A DNA stretch of 64,000 nucleotides from Dimorphilus gyrociliatus (Eukaryota > Animalia > Annelida), in assembly GCA_904063045.1 (NCBI GenBank), contig CAJFCJ010000006.1, forward strand, positions 1,651,601 through 1,715,600, in the 5' to 3' direction. Every line of letters starts with the position of its first letter. Position 1 is the stretch's first letter. The position numbers and the translations under genes are program-made. Positions 14,007-32,533 of this stretch are shown here, piece after piece. Below the pieces are notes generated by a model. It had not been told where the DNA came from. It made no database searches and saw nothing but the letters and a program-made list of their open reading frames with translations.

Positions 14007-15085
<1,079 letters not shown>

Positions 15086-19399: not shown

Positions 19400-20945
19400 C
19401 CCTTCTTTTCTTTTCTTTGCTTTCTTTTGCTTTCTTGTTTTTTTTTTATGTTATTTTCTTCGGATCCTTCGTTGCGCTATAGTTAAAGATTTCAATTTTC
19501 AATATAGTTTGATTTTTAATAGATATAGAATTGAAAACAGGGGAGGAAAGTTTAAGAGTCAACTGCGTGAAATTTTTAATATGCACTGTAGTCTAATATA
19601 TATATTTGTATATTATATATATTACAATATACAATATATATATTAATATATATATATATAATTAAAAAATGCTGTATAGCAACCTTCTGAGTTGGTAAGA
19701 ATTGAAAAAGGTGTTTGAAATCAATATATTAGAAAGAGTAACACAACAATTGTTGAATTTTATTAAAAGTATGAACAATTTTTACAGCATTCGAATAGAA
19801 GAAACTGAAATTTCGAAAGAATTTCGAGATATAAAGTAAGAACTGAATAAGCTAATTATTCTCACCTACAACGCGTTAGATTGAGCTAATTTGTAGAAAT
19901 TCCTTTTAAAATATGTTTTTATTATATTATTTATTTAGTTTATATATAGTTGGCGTCGTTGCCGCAAAAATCTGTAGCGCCGCCATTTATCGACATGGAA
20001 CAGTCGACGACGCACGAATGTTCAGCGTTTCTTAATGGAACGCAACCAAATTTTAATGAAGATCAGGTCTACATTTCAAAGAAACGGTTAAATGTTTTTT
20101 ATTGAATTTTTTAAAATTAATCTATTAAGTATGGTTAATTAATTAGTATTTTCCAAGTTTGTTCTATAGAAAATGTTCTTTTTCTTTTTTTGTTTGTTCT
20201 ACCATGAACTAGTCAAATATTATAAAAAATATCAAAAATTACATAAGTAATTAATAAAAAAGAAAATTTTATACGTTTTCTTATTCTTTCTTTCTTTTCC
20301 CGTTTATGCTCAACAGAACGGATCGTAAGAAGAGTAAATTTTGGTGGTTTAGAAGAACTTTTTTGGAGCGTTCTCTTATTCTGATTGTTCTATTCTTCCT
20401 TCTCGCTCTTATTGTTACGGTAATAGTCGCTGCTAGAAGATCATCAGGTAAACAAATTTTATATATACATATATATGTTTATATATAGATATGTATATAT
20501 TTAATAAAAATCAATAATAAATATATTTAAATGTATATTTTAGGGATAAATTATATATAGATGTATATTGTATTTAATTGCAGTATATATATTTAAATCC
20601 TTTTAGACATATATTGTACATATAAACTATATCTATACGGCATACAAATTTACATAAATTATGACATATTAGTATTTGTAAGTAAAATTATTATCACAGT
20701 ACCCTGGATACGATGAGGTGCTGTATAAAAACAGTAGAAATATCAATAGGCCTAACTGTTGATATATATGAAAGATATAATTTTTTTTGCAATTATTCAA
20801 AGATTATTACGTACATTACTTAAGATTTTTACAAAATAGTAAAAAGTTTACCGCCCAAACTAATTCTTGACTGGTTTTACGTTATATAACAAGAATCGTT
20901 CTACTTTTTTCTATAATCTCTCTTTTTCGCTTAGTCACTTTCCCT

Positions 20946-20981
<36 letters not shown>

Positions 20982-23900
20982 TCTCTGTCTGTTTGTCTAT
21001 TTATCTCTTTCTCTAGTATTTCCCTAAATTTTCATTTTTTATGTCATTTATCGGACCCAAAACATATTTTTTCATAAAGAGATAACTCATAAAAATGATT
21101 CGCAAAAATTTCTGTTTCAGATATAAATTACAGTAGGTGTGGCCTATTTTTCGTTCTTTATGAGATACAGTACAATATATACTAAATAATACTTTAGCAG
21201 TCAGAGTGTATAATTTACGTTGGTAAATGTATTTAGTAACAAAAAGGTACATTTCCATAACTTACATTGTTCAGTTTAGCACATACAGGAAATATATTGA
21301 TATTAGTAACTTGAGCTTTGTTTATTAGCATAATCTAGGAAAAGTTAAATGTCTTTTATTTTTTTTTGACATTTAATTTATCCTGTTTTTTCGTCATAGA
21401 AAAGAAAACAATGTATAGAGCATTGTAGTAATATTTATTCTCATACAGTTTTATACGTTAAACTATATAATTTTAACTTGTATCTGCTTTATTTTCTCTC
21501 TTTATAAACTGCATTAAGAAAGTAATCTTAGTTAGTATTTATTATTTATCTTTCTTTTCTGGAGTGAGTGATGCTAGAGTGTCATTTTTTATTAAAATAT
21601 ATATATATATATATATAACAAATATAAAAAGTGTATGAGGGATGTCTTTATCTTGAGTACTCGTTTTTATTATAGTCATGAATTTAGGCTGCCTTATTAT
21701 TAGACTATAGAAATATAAAGAATAAATTTGTTATACTAATTAATAGTCTAATCCCTATTAATTTACACATTTTCAAGGTAAAGTAAGAACATTGTATGTA
21801 TCTGTATTATATGTTTATGTACAGTATTATGTATGTATGATTACACTACATCGCTAGGTCTGTGTATATATATATATATTTATTTATAAAATATTATTAT
21901 AATTAAATATGCACACGAGTATACAATAAACCGTAAGCAATATACACTGGTAAGGTTATGAGTTCGTATACCTTACATAAAGGTGTAAGTCTTACTCTCT
22001 TCAAAAACACATGTTATATACGACATATTCTGTATGCATTTACTTCTTTCGTTACGCGATTGTTTGCCGCCTCTTTGTAGTTTTCTACCTATACGGATTA
22101 AAGCGTGCATTTGCTTTTTCCCATCCTTTTTTTTACCAATTCCTTAATTAGTCAATTTTCACAGGCTCAGATTACTTCGACCCAAGTGGAACTTGCTTAA
22201 AAGAAGAGTGTGTCAGCGCGGGTAATGTATCGTCTTAATTATTTTTTCTGTTCTTTCTCCACCTTCTCCCCCCTTCCTCTAACCCTTTTCTATTTTAGCA
22301 CGAATTAGTTGACCTTATTTTTTTTAACATAGCGGCGAGAATAATTGAAGCCAGAGATTTGACTGTCAATCCCTGCGACGACTTTTACGAATATGCTTGC
22401 GGTAATTGGAGGAAAAGGAATGTCGTACCGGAAGACCAGTCCAGTTATACGATGTTTACGGCGTTGAATGAACGCCTTGATAGGCTTTTGAAAGGCAAGT
22501 CAATTTCCTGTATCCTTTTTTTCCAGTTTACAATTCCGCATTGGTAGGTTGGCGTTGGCGTTTGAATGTCATAGAAAACTTTTAGTAAATAGTAAACCGC
22601 CTACGAACTTTTTCTAATGGTCCGAAATAGTTTTTTTTATATTTTTTTAACGGATTTTTTATGATAATTGCATACGAACTACTTGTAACCATGACCATCT
22701 TTTTGACAGAACTGATAGAAAACAACGAATATTTAAACACGCTAGCACCTATCCAAAAAGTACGAACACTGTATAATTCGTGTTTAAACACGACGAGAAT
22801 AGAAGATCGGGGTCTTCAACCTTTGACCGATCTCCTATCAGATCTCGGCGAATGGCCTGTGCTGAACCCTCACTGGACATCACAAGGGAAAAATTGGATT
22901 GATACTTTGGTTAAACTTCGTCTGTTTAATAACCAACCTCTATTCAAAACCTGGGTTCATGCCGACGAAAGAGAGCCGCTTAAGAACATTCTTCAGATTG
23001 ATCAAGCTGAGCTGGGTTTACCAACTAAAAACTTTTTCAAACAAAAATCGAAAACGGACGCCTATTTGAAATTTATGAAGGATGTTGCAAATCTGCTTCA
23101 AGCTTCGCGAGAGAGAGCGGACGAGCATCTCGGCGAAGTTCTTCGATTTGAAAAACGACTTTCGGGATTCTTGGCAGAGGAAGCATCGAGGCGTGACCTT
23201 AAAAAGATGTATAAGAAGATGACTTTGAAGGAATTGTCAAGAAATACGACGGTAAGCAATTTGTTAGGCTCTTTAGGCTTATTTTTAGCAGAGATCTACA
23301 TAGAAATTAATTATAGAATTATATGTTAATTATTTCCGCGAAATAAGCTAACTTTATATATTATTATTTCCCGTTGTAAGACTGTCTAATACGAGATTAT
23401 TATTATTATCCAAGTTTGCAAGGTATTCCCTTTGACAATACGTTTAATAAACGTCTTATAGGTAAGTATTATTATAAATGCTGCTCTATTCTTTTCAAGT
23501 TTCTTTAAAAGTAAGATGTATAATGGGAATCTAATTTTTTCTATTTCCATTACAGAACATAGACTGGATGAGATTCTTTACAAAAGTTTTTCAAAGTGTT
23601 AATATCAACATAACACAAGAGACCGAAGTTGTTGTATATAACTTAAAGTATCTAATCGATTTGGATTCTCTTATTGCGGAAGAAAAGGCCAAGTAAGTTA
23701 AAAGACGATTCAAAGAAAAATCCTTTTTTCCTCTTTTTTCTCTTTCTTTGCTTACTTTATTTAAAGAGATAAATAGATTTATATTTCTGGCAACGCCATC
23801 TGATGATTCTTACTGTTTAAGGAACTTTTGTAATTTATCATTAAAATGATTACACCATCAGAGGGCGCTTTAACTCAATCTATTTTATTCGATAAGCTCG

Positions 23901-26900
23901 TATACAGTTCCAATCGTATCATATTCGACTATTTGATATGGATAACGCTAACGAAGATTTATCCGACTCTACCTCAAAAATTCTTCGAAATCCGAAAACC
24001 TTATACGCAGGTAATTTCTTGACTGGAAAATATTAAAAGTTCTTTCCACTTCCCGTACAGTACCGATGCCGAACCATTATTTGAGACCACCATTCAAAAT
24101 TACGTAGTATGGTTAATGGTTAAGAATCGTTTAAAAAATATGGGTAAAAAATATTCCTCAGCCAGACTACCATTTCGCGAGGTATTCAGTAGGCCTATAA
24201 AATCAAATTAATGGGAGCTATATTTGATTCAGACGATTCAATTGATTATTCTTCATAATTTTTTAATTTACTCAGTAGTACCACTAATTTCACTAATTCA
24301 GGTATTAGATTGTAACCATGGGCCATACAAAATTTCACGCATGCCAAACATACTGTTTCGTTTTGTTTTTTTTTGCATATTTATCGAATATCGAACTTTT
24401 TCTTTCTCAGGTTATGTTTGGAACGACCCAAGAACAGGCTAGGTGGCGAGATTGCGTAACCGTAACAAACAACTTTTTGGGTTTCGCAACAAGTCGCCTA
24501 TTTGTTGATAGATATTTTGATGAATCGTCTAAAAAAGTTGCCCTGGAGATGATTGGAAAAGTTCGCGACTCTTTTAATGAGATCCTGAAAGAACTTGACT
24601 GGATGGACGATGAGGCCCGTAAAACTGCAAAAGAAAAAGCTGATGCTATTAGGGATAGTATCGGGTATCCGGAGTTTATTCAAAATAATACGGCTTTGAA
24701 TAATTATTATAAAAGTGTAAGCGTAAACCTCACAAATTGAGTTTATTTAATTAGAAAAAACCCATTCCAATAACATTATAGAGATAGGAGAGGAAATATC
24801 ACACTTATGATGTTTATTTACTTTATAGGTAACCGTCAATGAATCTAATTACTTTGAAAATTATCTGGAATTCCTAAAATTTACAACAAGAAGAGATCTA
24901 AGTAGATTAGATAAACCAGTTGATAAAACAATGTAAAACATCTTTTACTATATTTCAAATTTCTCTAATGATATTGTTTCCCTTCCCGTCATACAGCTGG
25001 CACACACCACCGACCACTGTAAACGCCTTCTATAATCCTATGTTTAATATGATAAGTTAGTTTCTTTTAAGAAAAAAATATTAAAATATCAAAGAGAAAC
25101 GGAAAAAAATTAACTTATGATGTCTTTTATACCTTTTCAATTTTCAGCTTTTCCTGCTGCCATACTGCAACCGCCTTTTTATAATGAAAACTTCCCAAAG
25201 TAAGTGAATTTAATTCTATAAATATTGGAAAAATGAAAATTCATCTTCTTATTTCCTTTTTATAATGCTTCTAACGCTTTTAATTAGCCTAACCGAGACG
25301 TTTCTGGCTTTTAGCACCGCAAATTATGAACAAAATATGCACTTCCTCTGTTTTTCCTACAAATATATATACACATATTCTATAGACTCTCTACTCAAAT
25401 TACAAATCAAATTATTTTCCTTTTACAACAAAAGAGTGAGAAAGAGATACTAAAAACATATTATATATACAGTATATATACATATATATATAAACATTAA
25501 TTGATTAATTAATTTTAAAAACAAAAACATACACAAAAAAGGTATTTAAATTACGGTGGAATCGGTTACGTAATCGGTCACGAAATATCTCACGGATTCG
25601 ACGATGTTGGTGAGTAGTAATTAGGTGTATATAAATTCTTGTACGGAAAATAACAAACAAAGGAAGGAACGCCCCTAAAAGGGCGTATCTTTTGCGATGC
25701 TTTGAAAAGCGAGATACGCCTCGAAGGTATAACAAGTTTGGAATAAAATTCGCGCTTCAGGTATATTAACTATGGAGGCATAGCAACCGTCATCGGTCAT
25801 GAAATCACTCATGGTTTCGACGATCGAGGTAAAAAGTTACAAGAGCATGAAGGGTTGATTTTAGTTTGATGCCCTGTAAACATGTCTGTAAACTACAAAT
25901 GTCAAGTACGAACTTTTACGTCTGTTTGTTTTTCAGTTAAGACGTCGACGTCACTAGTGTAGAATGTTGATCCCTAGACAACGCCATCTGACGATTACTT
26001 TAATTTTTTTGTTTTAGTTTGTTAAATCCCTGATTAGACCCCTGAATTTTGTATAATTAATAGACTGTAAAGTCGAACAGTTAGTTAAATCGTATCAGAG
26101 AAATAGAACATTAGTTAATATTCGTTTGTAATCCTCCTATGAAGGTTATTAAGGAGACTAATTAACTTGTGTACAAATTAAGGTCGGTTATTTGATAAGG
26201 ATGGAAAAATGAGAACATGGTGGTCTGACGAAGTTGTAAAAAAGTTCGAAAAAAGGGCTAGCTGCATAATAAACCAATACGGAAATTATCTGGTCGAAGA
26301 AGTCAATAAAACGGTAAATTTCTTCTAACCTTATCTAAGAAACCCAATTATTCTTGATTTAATGCTACAATTGAAAACTATTCCTAGAGAGAATCAAAGG
26401 AATAATTCAAATAAATATTCTTTTTCCAACAGATTAATGGAGTACAGACTCAAGGGGAAAACATTGCTGATAACGGCGGTTTAAAGCAGGCTTTTCGAGT
26501 AAAATTCACTATTAAAATAATTAATCCTCTTTTAGCTAAATTATGCACGAATAAATTAATCTAAATTTAATAGGCCTACAAGAAGCTTGTGAGGGAGGGT
26601 TTAAGAGAGCAAGTTCTACCAGGTATTGATTTGAACCCTGATCAATTATTCTTTTTAAATTTTGCTCAGGTAATTATAATTAAATGAGTGAGTGAAATAT
26701 CCCAAAAGAATTTTATCATTGATAAATATCTTCACAACAGGTCTGGTGTGGTTCTGAACGAAAAGAGTATTCTATGCAGACACTAACCAACGGAAAACAC
26801 AGTCCTGGAAGATTTAGGTTTGTATATGCGTATATTTTACTTTGTAATCATACTATATTTCATTATAGGGTTATTGGAACTCTACAAAACTCTGGAGACT

Positions 26901-26968
26901 TTGCGAAAGCATTTAAATGCGCCAACGGAAGTCCAATGAATCCTGAAAATAAATGTTCTTTATGGTGA
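18750..26968 (+). CDS. M13 neprilysin/endothelin-converting-enzyme-like type II membrane metallopeptidase with alternative first exons (18750-18802, 19335-19387, 19995-20086) and two mutually exclusive exon pairs (23908-24010 / 24061-24181 and 25542-25609 / 25761-25828)
   Basis: Transmembrane anchor (20317-20448), [40 protein letters not shown](S/T)[32 protein letters not shown] and C-terminal CSLW. Splice junctions were checked by hand and are phase-consistent. Confidence 0.95.
19071..19130. repeat. 25-bp minisatellite, 2.4 copies (gtatgtatactgtatacatgtgtgt)
   Basis: Direct read; it lies between the two duplicated first-exon modules. Confidence 0.9.
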
Positions 26969-28674
26969 CTGCGCTCGACTTGAATGGTCCCTTACAGCTT
27001 GCTTTTTCCTCCCTCAACCAAATCTACTTCTGCTCCTCCTGTTTCTCCATCATGGTTTTCTCCCTTCTTCTCTATTGCTCTTCAGATATATTAAAAATAT
27101 AGTTCAACCTTAAGAAATCGTCGCTACGTCACCGAAGAAAAAATTTCTGCTGTTTTACTAAAAAGAGAATTAAAAAAAAAACATAAAAAGAAACAAAAAA
27201 ATCATTAATTTTTTCAATAAGTTTCCAAATATTTTTTAGTTGAGAAATTTGAAAGTTTGCTTGAATTTCGTTTATTTTCTCTCCTCCTTTCTCTCCTTTT
27301 CCATTGCTATCTTGTATAAAAACAGATTTAAAAAAAACAGAAAAACAGAAAAAAAAAATCCAAAGAGACTAATTCTTTTGGTATTAATGTTTAAAAAAAT
27401 ACTATATACTAATGAACTAAGTGTAATGATATAAATAATATATATTGTATATATATAGTGTTTTTTAAACAAAGATATTTCATTGTCTCTAAACTTTGTA
27501 AATATAAAAAAGGCTACATTGTAATTTGTGTGATTTAATTAACTAATTAATAATTTCATAAAAATTCTTTTTTCATATATTCTATAAAAATTTAGTTAGT
27601 TAATTCCATGTTTTATTGCGTGTTAAATAGAATTCTTTATAATAAAAAAAACTACTAATTTTTTAGAGAGAGAGAGACTGATATAATGTAAAAGTTAATT
27701 CTTTATATGCTCTATTTTGTCCCTTTAACTTCCGTATTAATATTTTTCATGATTGTGAACAAAAATTTTAATACAACTTTAAAATAGATTGTAAATGATT
27801 TATTCAAATTTTATATAGTATAAACTATGAAAGAGGATTTTTGGAGAAGAGGAAAGGAATAGATAGAATATAATATTTACACAAAGAGGCTAATAGTAAG
27901 AAAGGAAAATGGAATAGCAGGAAATAGATAAAAGAAAAAAAACACCGCTCCATATTTATTGAATCAATGACATTTATTTATTAAATATTTTCTATGCTTG
28001 TTTATTCAAGATTTTTACAAACTAAAACTTTCTTTGAAAGGTAAAACTACATCAAAAAAAAAAAAAGAAGCAACAAAACAAACCTTACAATCTCTACTTT
28101 CATCTGAAAATTATCCTTCTTCCTTTAGTTCCGTCTACTATATAGTTTATAAATGATAACTATTGTGGATAAAAATCACGTTACGTTAGTCTCATAGAGT
28201 TATATACACGTATGATAATACTAGATTTTTCTAAATACTCCTTCCTTACTATATATCCTAAAAAAGAGAGAGAGAATTGAAAAACTCCAAACAATATTAG
28301 TATTATTATTAAAATTTATAATAATAAAAAAAAATAAAACGTGACAAGCATAAAATCAAAGAAAATATAATAAAATAAAATAAAAAACAAGCAGATCTTT
28401 GAATATATAAATAGTTAAAAAGTATATAAAAAAAAACTTATTAGGTTGAAGGTGTAAAGATTGTTAATAAAAAATGTTTATTATATAGATAATATCTTCT
28501 AAATTCGATGATATTTGTTTATTCTTGTCTCCCATTAACCGAGTAAATAGTTATAGAGTGTTGTTCGTTTTTTTTTTTTGTTTTGTTTTTTCAATTTTTG
28601 TTTACTAATCTAAGAAAGATTTGAGTAGTTTTCCCTCTTTTTGCCTGTCTGCCTGTCCCTCTGAGCAGATGACT

Positions 28675-29543
28675 TTAAAATCCTTTTCGGGATCTTGCTC
28701 GGCTGGAATATTGAGAATAATCGGCGAAATGGTCATCGGAAGCCGTGGCTATTCTTGGTTGAATAAGAACTGAGGGTTTACCGATCGATTCGGCGTAGTC
28801 GGCTGTTTTATTTACAAAGGGATAAAATTGTTTTCTTCTATTAATAGATATTTATAACTAAACTTACATTTTGCAACGACAGGTATAGTCTCATTTTTAA
28901 GTAAAACTCTAGATCGCCTCGGAACTTGTCTAGAACCTAGTACAATTGCCAAGAGAGCTAAAACGATTCCGTCGAATATAGCTATGACGGCTAATATCAA
29001 AGCCCAACGAATTTCACAATCTGCCCTATCAAACTTATCCGAATCTTTACCACAAACTCTTCTGACGTCTTTGTCATCCCACCCATTAGGATAAACTAAA
29101 CAACCGATTGCCAGAAAGATAGCAGCTAGTATCAAAAGCATAGCTATACTGTAGTATACTCGCTTAGGTGATACGAAGAAAAAGAGGAGGAGAGAGATTA
29201 CACAGAAGAAGATAATTAGCACAGAGATTCCAACAAGAACAGTAGCAGCTTTAAAGTTCCCATTGAGTATTGATGAAAAATTATCCAATCCACCAAAACA
29301 CTTTAATTCACCAGATGTATCCTCAAGGAGAATGCAATATTTAAATAGACCAAAATATCCAGTTCCTGGTGAACTTTTAGAGTCACCCAGCCATTGTGGC
29401 TGAGCGAAAACGACTACTTCGATAATAGCCAAACAGATAACGAATAGAGCCCAAATAACGCCGACAACTCGGGCGTTTCTTACGTATTTATAATAATATA
29501 TTTTTGTCGCCTCCGCGGCACTTTGATAAGACGAACGATCCAT
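28675..29543 (-). CDS. LHFPL: LHFPL tetraspan / TMHS family (LHFPL3/4/5-like); exons 29543-28868, 28802-28675
   Basis: AAEATKIYYYKYVRNARVVGVIWALF, QPQWLGD, GYFGLFKYC, YPNGWD and CEIRWALILA, with four transmembrane segments. Confidence 0.92.
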
Positions 29544-30108
29544 ACTGAAATAAGAATTTTCACTTTTAAAATACCTGTTTAAATAATCAACTTTTCAAGA
29601 CACTGCAAATAGTAAATATATGTGGAATTTTTCACATAGTAGCGGTATCCTACGTACCTATATTTAATCATATGAAACAGGTTTAGACAGTACAATAAGG
29701 CTATTATTCATACAGCTTGAACGATTAAACTTAAGGAATTTTGTGTTGCTTTGACGCACTAATCGACCATATTAATTGCATTTCTTATAGGAAAGTATAT
29801 GTAAAAGTTACTCACACTGATTAATAATGTTCAACAATTTGTATAAAATGAAAAAATTGAAGATTATAATTACATTATTGACTCGCTTTCGAGCGTTCAA
29901 TATATAGTGTGGTTCGTGCTTTGTTCTCGTTTAAAATAAATAATTTTATTCATTATTTTTACATCGATATAAATGTTTAGATATTTACAATTTTCTGTGA
30001 GGTAATAAATAGAAACACAGTTTTGTTTTTCTTTTAACAGGTAAATGCAAGGGAACCATACTTTTCAGGTGGTTTCCGGTCAGGTAAGACAAATACAAAT
30101 CGGAAAAG

Positions 30109-31240: not shown

Positions 31241-32533
<1,293 letters not shown>

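Follow-up and report, generated by a model that had tools for sequence, protein, structure and literature searches.

Evidence for a tandem-duplicated, mutually exclusive exon pair in the non-catalytic lobe of an M13 peptidase gene of the annelid Dimorphilus gyrociliatus

Two adjacent exons of an M13 (neprilysin/ECE-type) peptidase gene, here called A and B, are very probably a tandem-duplicated, mutually exclusive pair, of which each mRNA takes one, giving two enzymes from a single gene. Their backbone would be common, and each would have its own version of some 32 core residues of the N-terminal helical domain. The gene lies on the + strand of the window, by which we mean the whole stretch of DNA analyzed (64,000 nucleotides). 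Its features are collected in Table 1.

The peptidase was recognized by an exon-by-exon Pfam search, in which exons were searched singly; exon strings were joined solely for counting to the first stop in the four splice outcomes. PF05649 (Peptidase_M13_N) is matched by four exons with E-values from 5.8e-15 to 2.8e-38, and more weakly by a fifth (4.6e-4). Both exons that contain the HExxH motif, together with two C-terminal exons, match PF01431 (Peptidase_M13) above its curated cut-off, and the alignment partner of the HExxH exon is the His583/His587 region of neprilysin. The open frame 20258-20485 contains a hydrophobic stretch, a putative N-terminal transmembrane anchor. The gene is read as that of a putative type-II membrane M13 peptidase resembling neprilysin or ECE. 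It is of note that the intron at 22495-22709 is of the GC-AG type (donor GCAAGT). Its joint is present in RNA contigs of X3 and X5, and the GC donor is kept in the related genomic contig L007.

Table 1. Positions of exons and intron elements in the window, with supporting matches and the comparison with L007, a genomic contig of a more distant relative
Feature	Position	Strand	Splice sites, RNA and profile matches	Comparison with L007
Upstream constitutive exon	23556..23692	+	Pfam M13_N 224-261; RNA joints 23250->23555, 23692->23908	
18-nt element (hairpin 5' arm)	23791..23808	+	two matches in the window vs 0.11 expected	invariant (run 23792-23808)
Hairpin upstream of A	23794..23867	+	ends 40 nt before the A acceptor	
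3' splice-site region of A	23854..23907	+		invariant; runs 23854-23876, 23877-23915
Exon A	23908..24010 (103 nt)	+	AG 23906-07, GT 24011-12; spliced in X2, X3	92% identity, no gaps; pS 0.18 (0.179), pN 0.05 (0.050), dN/dS 0.25
Spacer intron A-B	24011..24060 (50 nt)	+	from sequence	86% identity; 50 nt in both species, no indel
Spacer, 3' part	24031-24062	+		invariant
Exon B	24061..24181 (121 nt)	+	AG 24059-60, GT 24182-83; joined to 23692 in X2 contig	83% identity, no gaps; pS 0.38 (0.383), pN 0.11 (0.112), dN/dS 0.23
Intron block with two ACUAAU	24283..24299	+		17 identical bases in an intron otherwise 64% identical
Intron block with GCAUG	24330..24344	+		15 identical bases
Downstream constitutive exon	24411..24716	+	opens with VMFGTT; Pfam M13_N 297-381	
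HExxH exon pair	25542-25609 and 25761-25828	+	68-nt twins	
18-nt element, second copy	25979-25996		downstream of the HExxH pair	invariant
Constitutive exons, pooled				79-98% identity; pS 0.61 (0.613), pN 0.045
Ordinary introns				41-78% identity, many gaps

The coordinates, AG/GT ends, phases and open frames that the initial annotation had given for A and B are borne out by the sequence, as is the distance of 50 nt between them. Only the end of the upstream exon, placed there at 23693, needed correction to 23692: the donor GT occupies 23693-94 and the RNA joint leaves from 23692. The last two bases of this exon belong to a split codon, which is completed by the first base of either A or B; both exons are stop-free in this frame and exit in phase 0. 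Joint inclusion of the two (224 nt), which had been predicted to shift the frame, does so, with a stop reached 8 codons into B; when both are skipped, a stop follows 17 codons into the downstream exon. We infer that mRNAs mis-spliced in either way, with both exons or with neither, would be removed by nonsense-mediated decay.

Are both exons spliced into RNA? Assembled contigs of four public runs were placed on positions 21900-27100; these runs come from relatives, and the contigs are not raw reads of this strain. Thirteen joints fall exactly at GT..AG boundaries and one at a GC..AG boundary, which indicates that the contigs derive from spliced RNA. A 1663-nt contig of X3 has the joints 23692->23908 and 24010->24411 and so represents the A form, the only form among the X3 contigs. 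X2 has two short contigs with common flanks, one of 160 nt containing A (29 + 103 + 28) and one of 178 nt containing B (29 + 121 + 28); in the latter, 23692 is joined to exon B, with six variant letters in place of 24061-24066. Since A and B share their first T and their last AG, each arm overlaps the flanks by 30 bases (k-1, where k = 31), and the two contigs have the signature of the two arms of a de Bruijn bubble at k = 31. The joint from B to 24411 is not itself printed but is deduced from the length of the 178-nt contig. The depths of the arms, 6.66 and 5.9, are close to 1:1 and sum roughly to that of the flank (13.9), contig depth being a rough measure. No A-B joint is found among the listed contig joints and the arm contigs run unbranched into the flanks, although contigs cannot prove absence. 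The two single-inclusion forms that mutual exclusivity calls for are thus both present in RNA contigs of a close relative, and, of the junctions named beforehand as diagnostic, 23692->23908, 24010->24411 and 23692 to B are there while B->24411 is deduced. Within the intron before A, a CT-rich low-complexity tract (23723-23753) draws unrelated contigs at high depth (150 in X3) with loose ends on both sides; contig depth over this tract is not evidence of intron expression.

The matches of the flanking exons to Pfam M13_N leave a hole of about 35 profile positions (262-296), which is filled by A or by B. When the A or B peptide alone was used in a Pfam search no threshold was reached, the peptides being too short. 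A local profile was therefore made from 78 homologues found in an exhaustive protein search, taking the 48 residues ahead of their GTT..RW motif, and each peptide was scored on it separately. A scored 19.0 bits (best of 1000 shuffles, 9.5) and B 34.5 bits (best of 1000 shuffles, 9.4), and the two align to the same profile columns, with 6 of 32 residues identical in register. The earlier proposal that both exons correspond to this M13 segment is accordingly supported at scores above chance, and the alignment to an M13 profile, in the form of this local profile, puts both exons in the same columns. Exon A is the more diverged copy of the helical-domain segment, whereas the core of B is nearer the family consensus; B begins with six extra residues, a variable extension. 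Structure matches obtained with B alone were chance matches to ribosomal proteins (E about 0.4-1) and were discarded. In that exhaustive protein search, for which the query was the 180-residue exon of the gene, the nearest match was 43% identical, so that close kin are absent among the cluster representatives; a metagenome scan returned a single relative at 36% identity.

When the downstream exon was used as query, one Logan-derived protein was found at 97% identity, and genomic contigs of this more distant relative (L007 to L009) were aligned to the window. L007 is 76% identical to the window overall, and synteny between them reaches at least position 30098. By eye, the neighboring open frames at 14191-15082 (+) and 28815-29594 (-) resemble PCNA and a SMAD, respectively; another at 31241-32530 (+) encodes a membrane protein, the L007 counterpart of which matches PF10242 (L_HMGIC_fpl). 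No exon is gapped in L007 and every splice site is kept. In A and B taken together, synonymous exceeds nonsynonymous divergence (Fisher p = 9e-4), and a smaller share of synonymous sites has changed in A (p = 1.6e-4) and in B (p = 0.03) than in the constitutive exons. Lowered synonymous divergence is usual for regulated alternative exons. The nonsynonymous rate of B is above that of the constitutive exons (p = 0.007), about half of its changes lying in the first 8 residues. The X2/X3 lineage has different substitutions in A (three are visible, all synonymous), and over the whole gene 27 of its 28 visible codon changes are synonymous. The pair is therefore kept in three lineages: the window species, L007 and X2/X3. 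The nearest homologues are distant (35-43% identical); at five of their loci there is no second copy but a single exon with the same end boundary. The duplication is thus not shared at that depth, with the reservation that the orthology of these loci is uncertain, and from sequence comparison the pair looks lineage-specific rather than ancient across phyla. The original suggestion of an old duplication under selection holds to the depth of L007, at which synonymous sites are near saturation; the dN/dS values against this relative, which the annotation had proposed to compute, are about 0.25 for each exon (Table 1).

Could A and B both be spliced and yet be functionally equivalent, a neutral leftover of duplication in which the loss of either copy is not favored? 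The near 1:1 depth of the two arms in X2, with no obvious switch, would fit such equivalence, as would the freedom with which the N-terminal extension of B evolves. Nevertheless, two copies that have come to share only 6 of 32 residues now change slowly (pN 0.05-0.11, against a pS of 0.61 in the constitutive exons), the synonymous sites and the flanking intron blocks are themselves constrained, and the presence of A only in X3 and of both forms in X2 hints at regulation, so that we give neutral equivalence a slim chance. Slimmer still, to the point of being hardly credible, is the chance that either A or B is a pseudo-exon in decay, spliced only as noise. In favor of this, the match of A to the family profile is poor (19 bits), its pyrimidine tract is weak, and B is absent from the X3 contigs. 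Against decay stand the lack of indels and the kept splice sites in L007, where ordinary introns are 41-64% identical and rich in gaps, and also a dN/dS near 0.25 for each exon and the similar depth of the two X2 arms.

A different question is what prevents joint inclusion in a mutually exclusive pair. Instead of reading frame and mRNA decay, the 50-nt spacer might simply be too short to be spliced. In both species it measures exactly 50 nt, the listed joints include none from A to B, and short spacers have this effect in C. elegans and in mammals (PMC4165533). That said, a 51-nt intron of the same gene (26818-26868) is spliced, this being the only form seen, and for this species a median intron of 66 bp is reported, along with an adaptation of splicing to short introns (PMC7854359). 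It cannot therefore be assumed that a 50-nt spacer is unspliceable, and we regard steric exclusion as possible but on the whole doubtful. It concerns mechanism only and is compatible with the reading of A and B as a mutually exclusive pair.

If A and B are indeed chosen between, the introns around them contain candidates for the control of that choice, and we infer that it may be regulated through a hairpin beside the branch region of A and conserved blocks downstream of B. For the hairpin the predicted folding energy is -21.3 kcal/mol (z = -3.2) in the window and -18.9 kcal/mol in L007; the two sequences are identical in both arms and differ in the loop. When some 5600 positions are ranked as duplex partners of the 5' element, the 3' arm comes first or second in both species. 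The invariant 3' splice-site region of A, with its weak, purine-rich pyrimidine tract, probably includes the branch site. With respect to docking/selector control by competing RNA structures, as in Dscam or 14-3-3 zeta, the observations are this conserved hairpin upstream of A and the 11-bp pairing described below; the comparison consists of two sequences with invariant arms, in which no covariation can be read. The fold of the whole cluster RNA reached a z of -2.05 only. The 18-nt element can also form an 11-bp pairing with exon B that both species retain; energetically unremarkable and not among the strongest partners, it was dropped as evidence. The short inverted repeats of the cluster are at chance level by our own estimate, and the idea that the hairpin, which contains UGAUGA, is a box C/D snoRNA was abandoned after an Rfam search of the introns found nothing. 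As for the blocks downstream of B, the ACUAAU copies resemble STAR/Quaking-type binding sites, and GCAUG is the core of RBFOX-type sites; both are leads at the level of the motif.

The same gene has another pair of twin exons, which carry HExxH and follow the same logic as A and B, with a copy of the 18-nt element nearby. The two pairs differ in what they exchange: in the HExxH pair it is the catalytic domain's zinc-binding helix, in A and B a diverged segment of the non-catalytic domain. The protein sequence of the HExxH pair is unchanged between the window species and L007. The listed RNA joints involve copy 2 only (25199->25761 and 25828->26183). An X3 contig has a loose end at 25148 whose letters, read on the other strand, give the end of copy 1 (HGFDDVG, with synonymous variants) fused to the start of the exon at 26183-26313, which is RNA evidence for the use of copy 1 as well. 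Against 41-78% in ordinary introns of the gene, identity to L007 is 95% in the intron that separates the copies (25610-25760) and about 90% over the first 170 or so nucleotides after copy 2 (25829-25996), and RNA contigs of X1 to X3 cover parts of these two stretches at 97-100% identity. Beyond the second 18-nt copy the sequence can no longer be aligned to L007. Position 14 of the element is T in one copy and C in the other, in both species alike. That the common element might coordinate the A/B and HExxH choices is a speculative idea to which we give a small chance. Were it true, a given variant of the helical lobe would be paired with a given variant of the catalytic helix, and co-adapted domain interfaces would be built into splicing.

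Where do A and B lie in the protein? Alignment places the downstream exon on chain positions 344-443 of 1DMT and 320-418 of 3DWB. The HExxH exon fixes the offset to neprilysin numbering at 53, which with the 1DMT alignment identifies the G of VMFGTT as neprilysin G399. The A/B segment corresponds approximately to neprilysin residues 360-395 and ends one residue before the LYG399 motif. The annotation was right, then, in locating the exchange in the non-catalytic lobe, since it falls in the N-terminal helical domain just before G399. In neprilysin this glycine belongs to domain 2 and lies where that domain meets domain 1. With the G399V substitution alone, kcat/KM for bradykinin falls 250-fold and inhibitors bind less well; in the variant structure the helix preceding residue 399 is shifted (Webster et al. 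2014, PMC4121237). Selectivity for substrates and inhibitors is controlled at this site, away from the zinc (PMC4121237). By analogy, the exchange of A for B may change interdomain geometry, and the isoforms may for that reason differ in substrate or inhibitor selectivity. Human neprilysin G399V/G714K is altered at the same structural spot, the domain interface beside the A/B helix. It is, however, a laboratory point mutant of a vertebrate enzyme, whereas the worm makes a natural splice choice over about 32 core residues, and in the worm the conserved glycine itself is in the shared downstream exon, A and B being upstream of it.

The splicing mode is ordinary and found in textbooks. In C. elegans there are 29 clusters of mutually exclusive, tandem-duplicated homologous exons, and mRNA decay has been reported for 14 of them (PMC4165533); exon substitutions of this kind have also been catalogued in human (PMC9741552, PMC5740500). 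A and B resemble these clusters in being adjacent homologous exons of the same phase of which only single inclusion stays in frame, and also in their reduced synonymous divergence, conserved flanking introns and, probably, fidelity through mRNA decay. The host gene family differs. The supplements examined of the two human catalogues contain no M13 gene symbols (PMC9741552, PMC5740500), the C. elegans catalogue makes no mention of peptidases (PMC4165533), a literature search for 'mutually exclusive exons' with 'neprilysin' found the two co-occurring in a single paper and only as independent terms, and among the papers listed for 'mutually exclusive' with 'endothelin-converting enzyme' none contained both. 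Mutually exclusive exons therefore seem to be undescribed for the M13 family. ECE-1, which in the form of 3DWB is the best match of the downstream exon among solved structures, resembles the worm gene in that one M13 gene gives several proteins. Its isoforms a-d stem from alternative promoters; they differ in the cytoplasmic tail and are not known to differ elsewhere, the ectodomain included, whereas A and B vary the ectodomain.

Taken as a mutually exclusive pair, A and B would represent a natural diversification of an M13 ectodomain at a spot where one engineered substitution in neprilysin reshapes selectivity, and the two worm isoforms would form a natural experiment in how the non-catalytic lobe tunes access and specificity. 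With its A/B and HExxH pairs, the gene may offer a compact model for the co-regulation of distant mutually exclusive clusters, and its invariant intron blocks are candidate regulatory elements in an annelid with very short introns.
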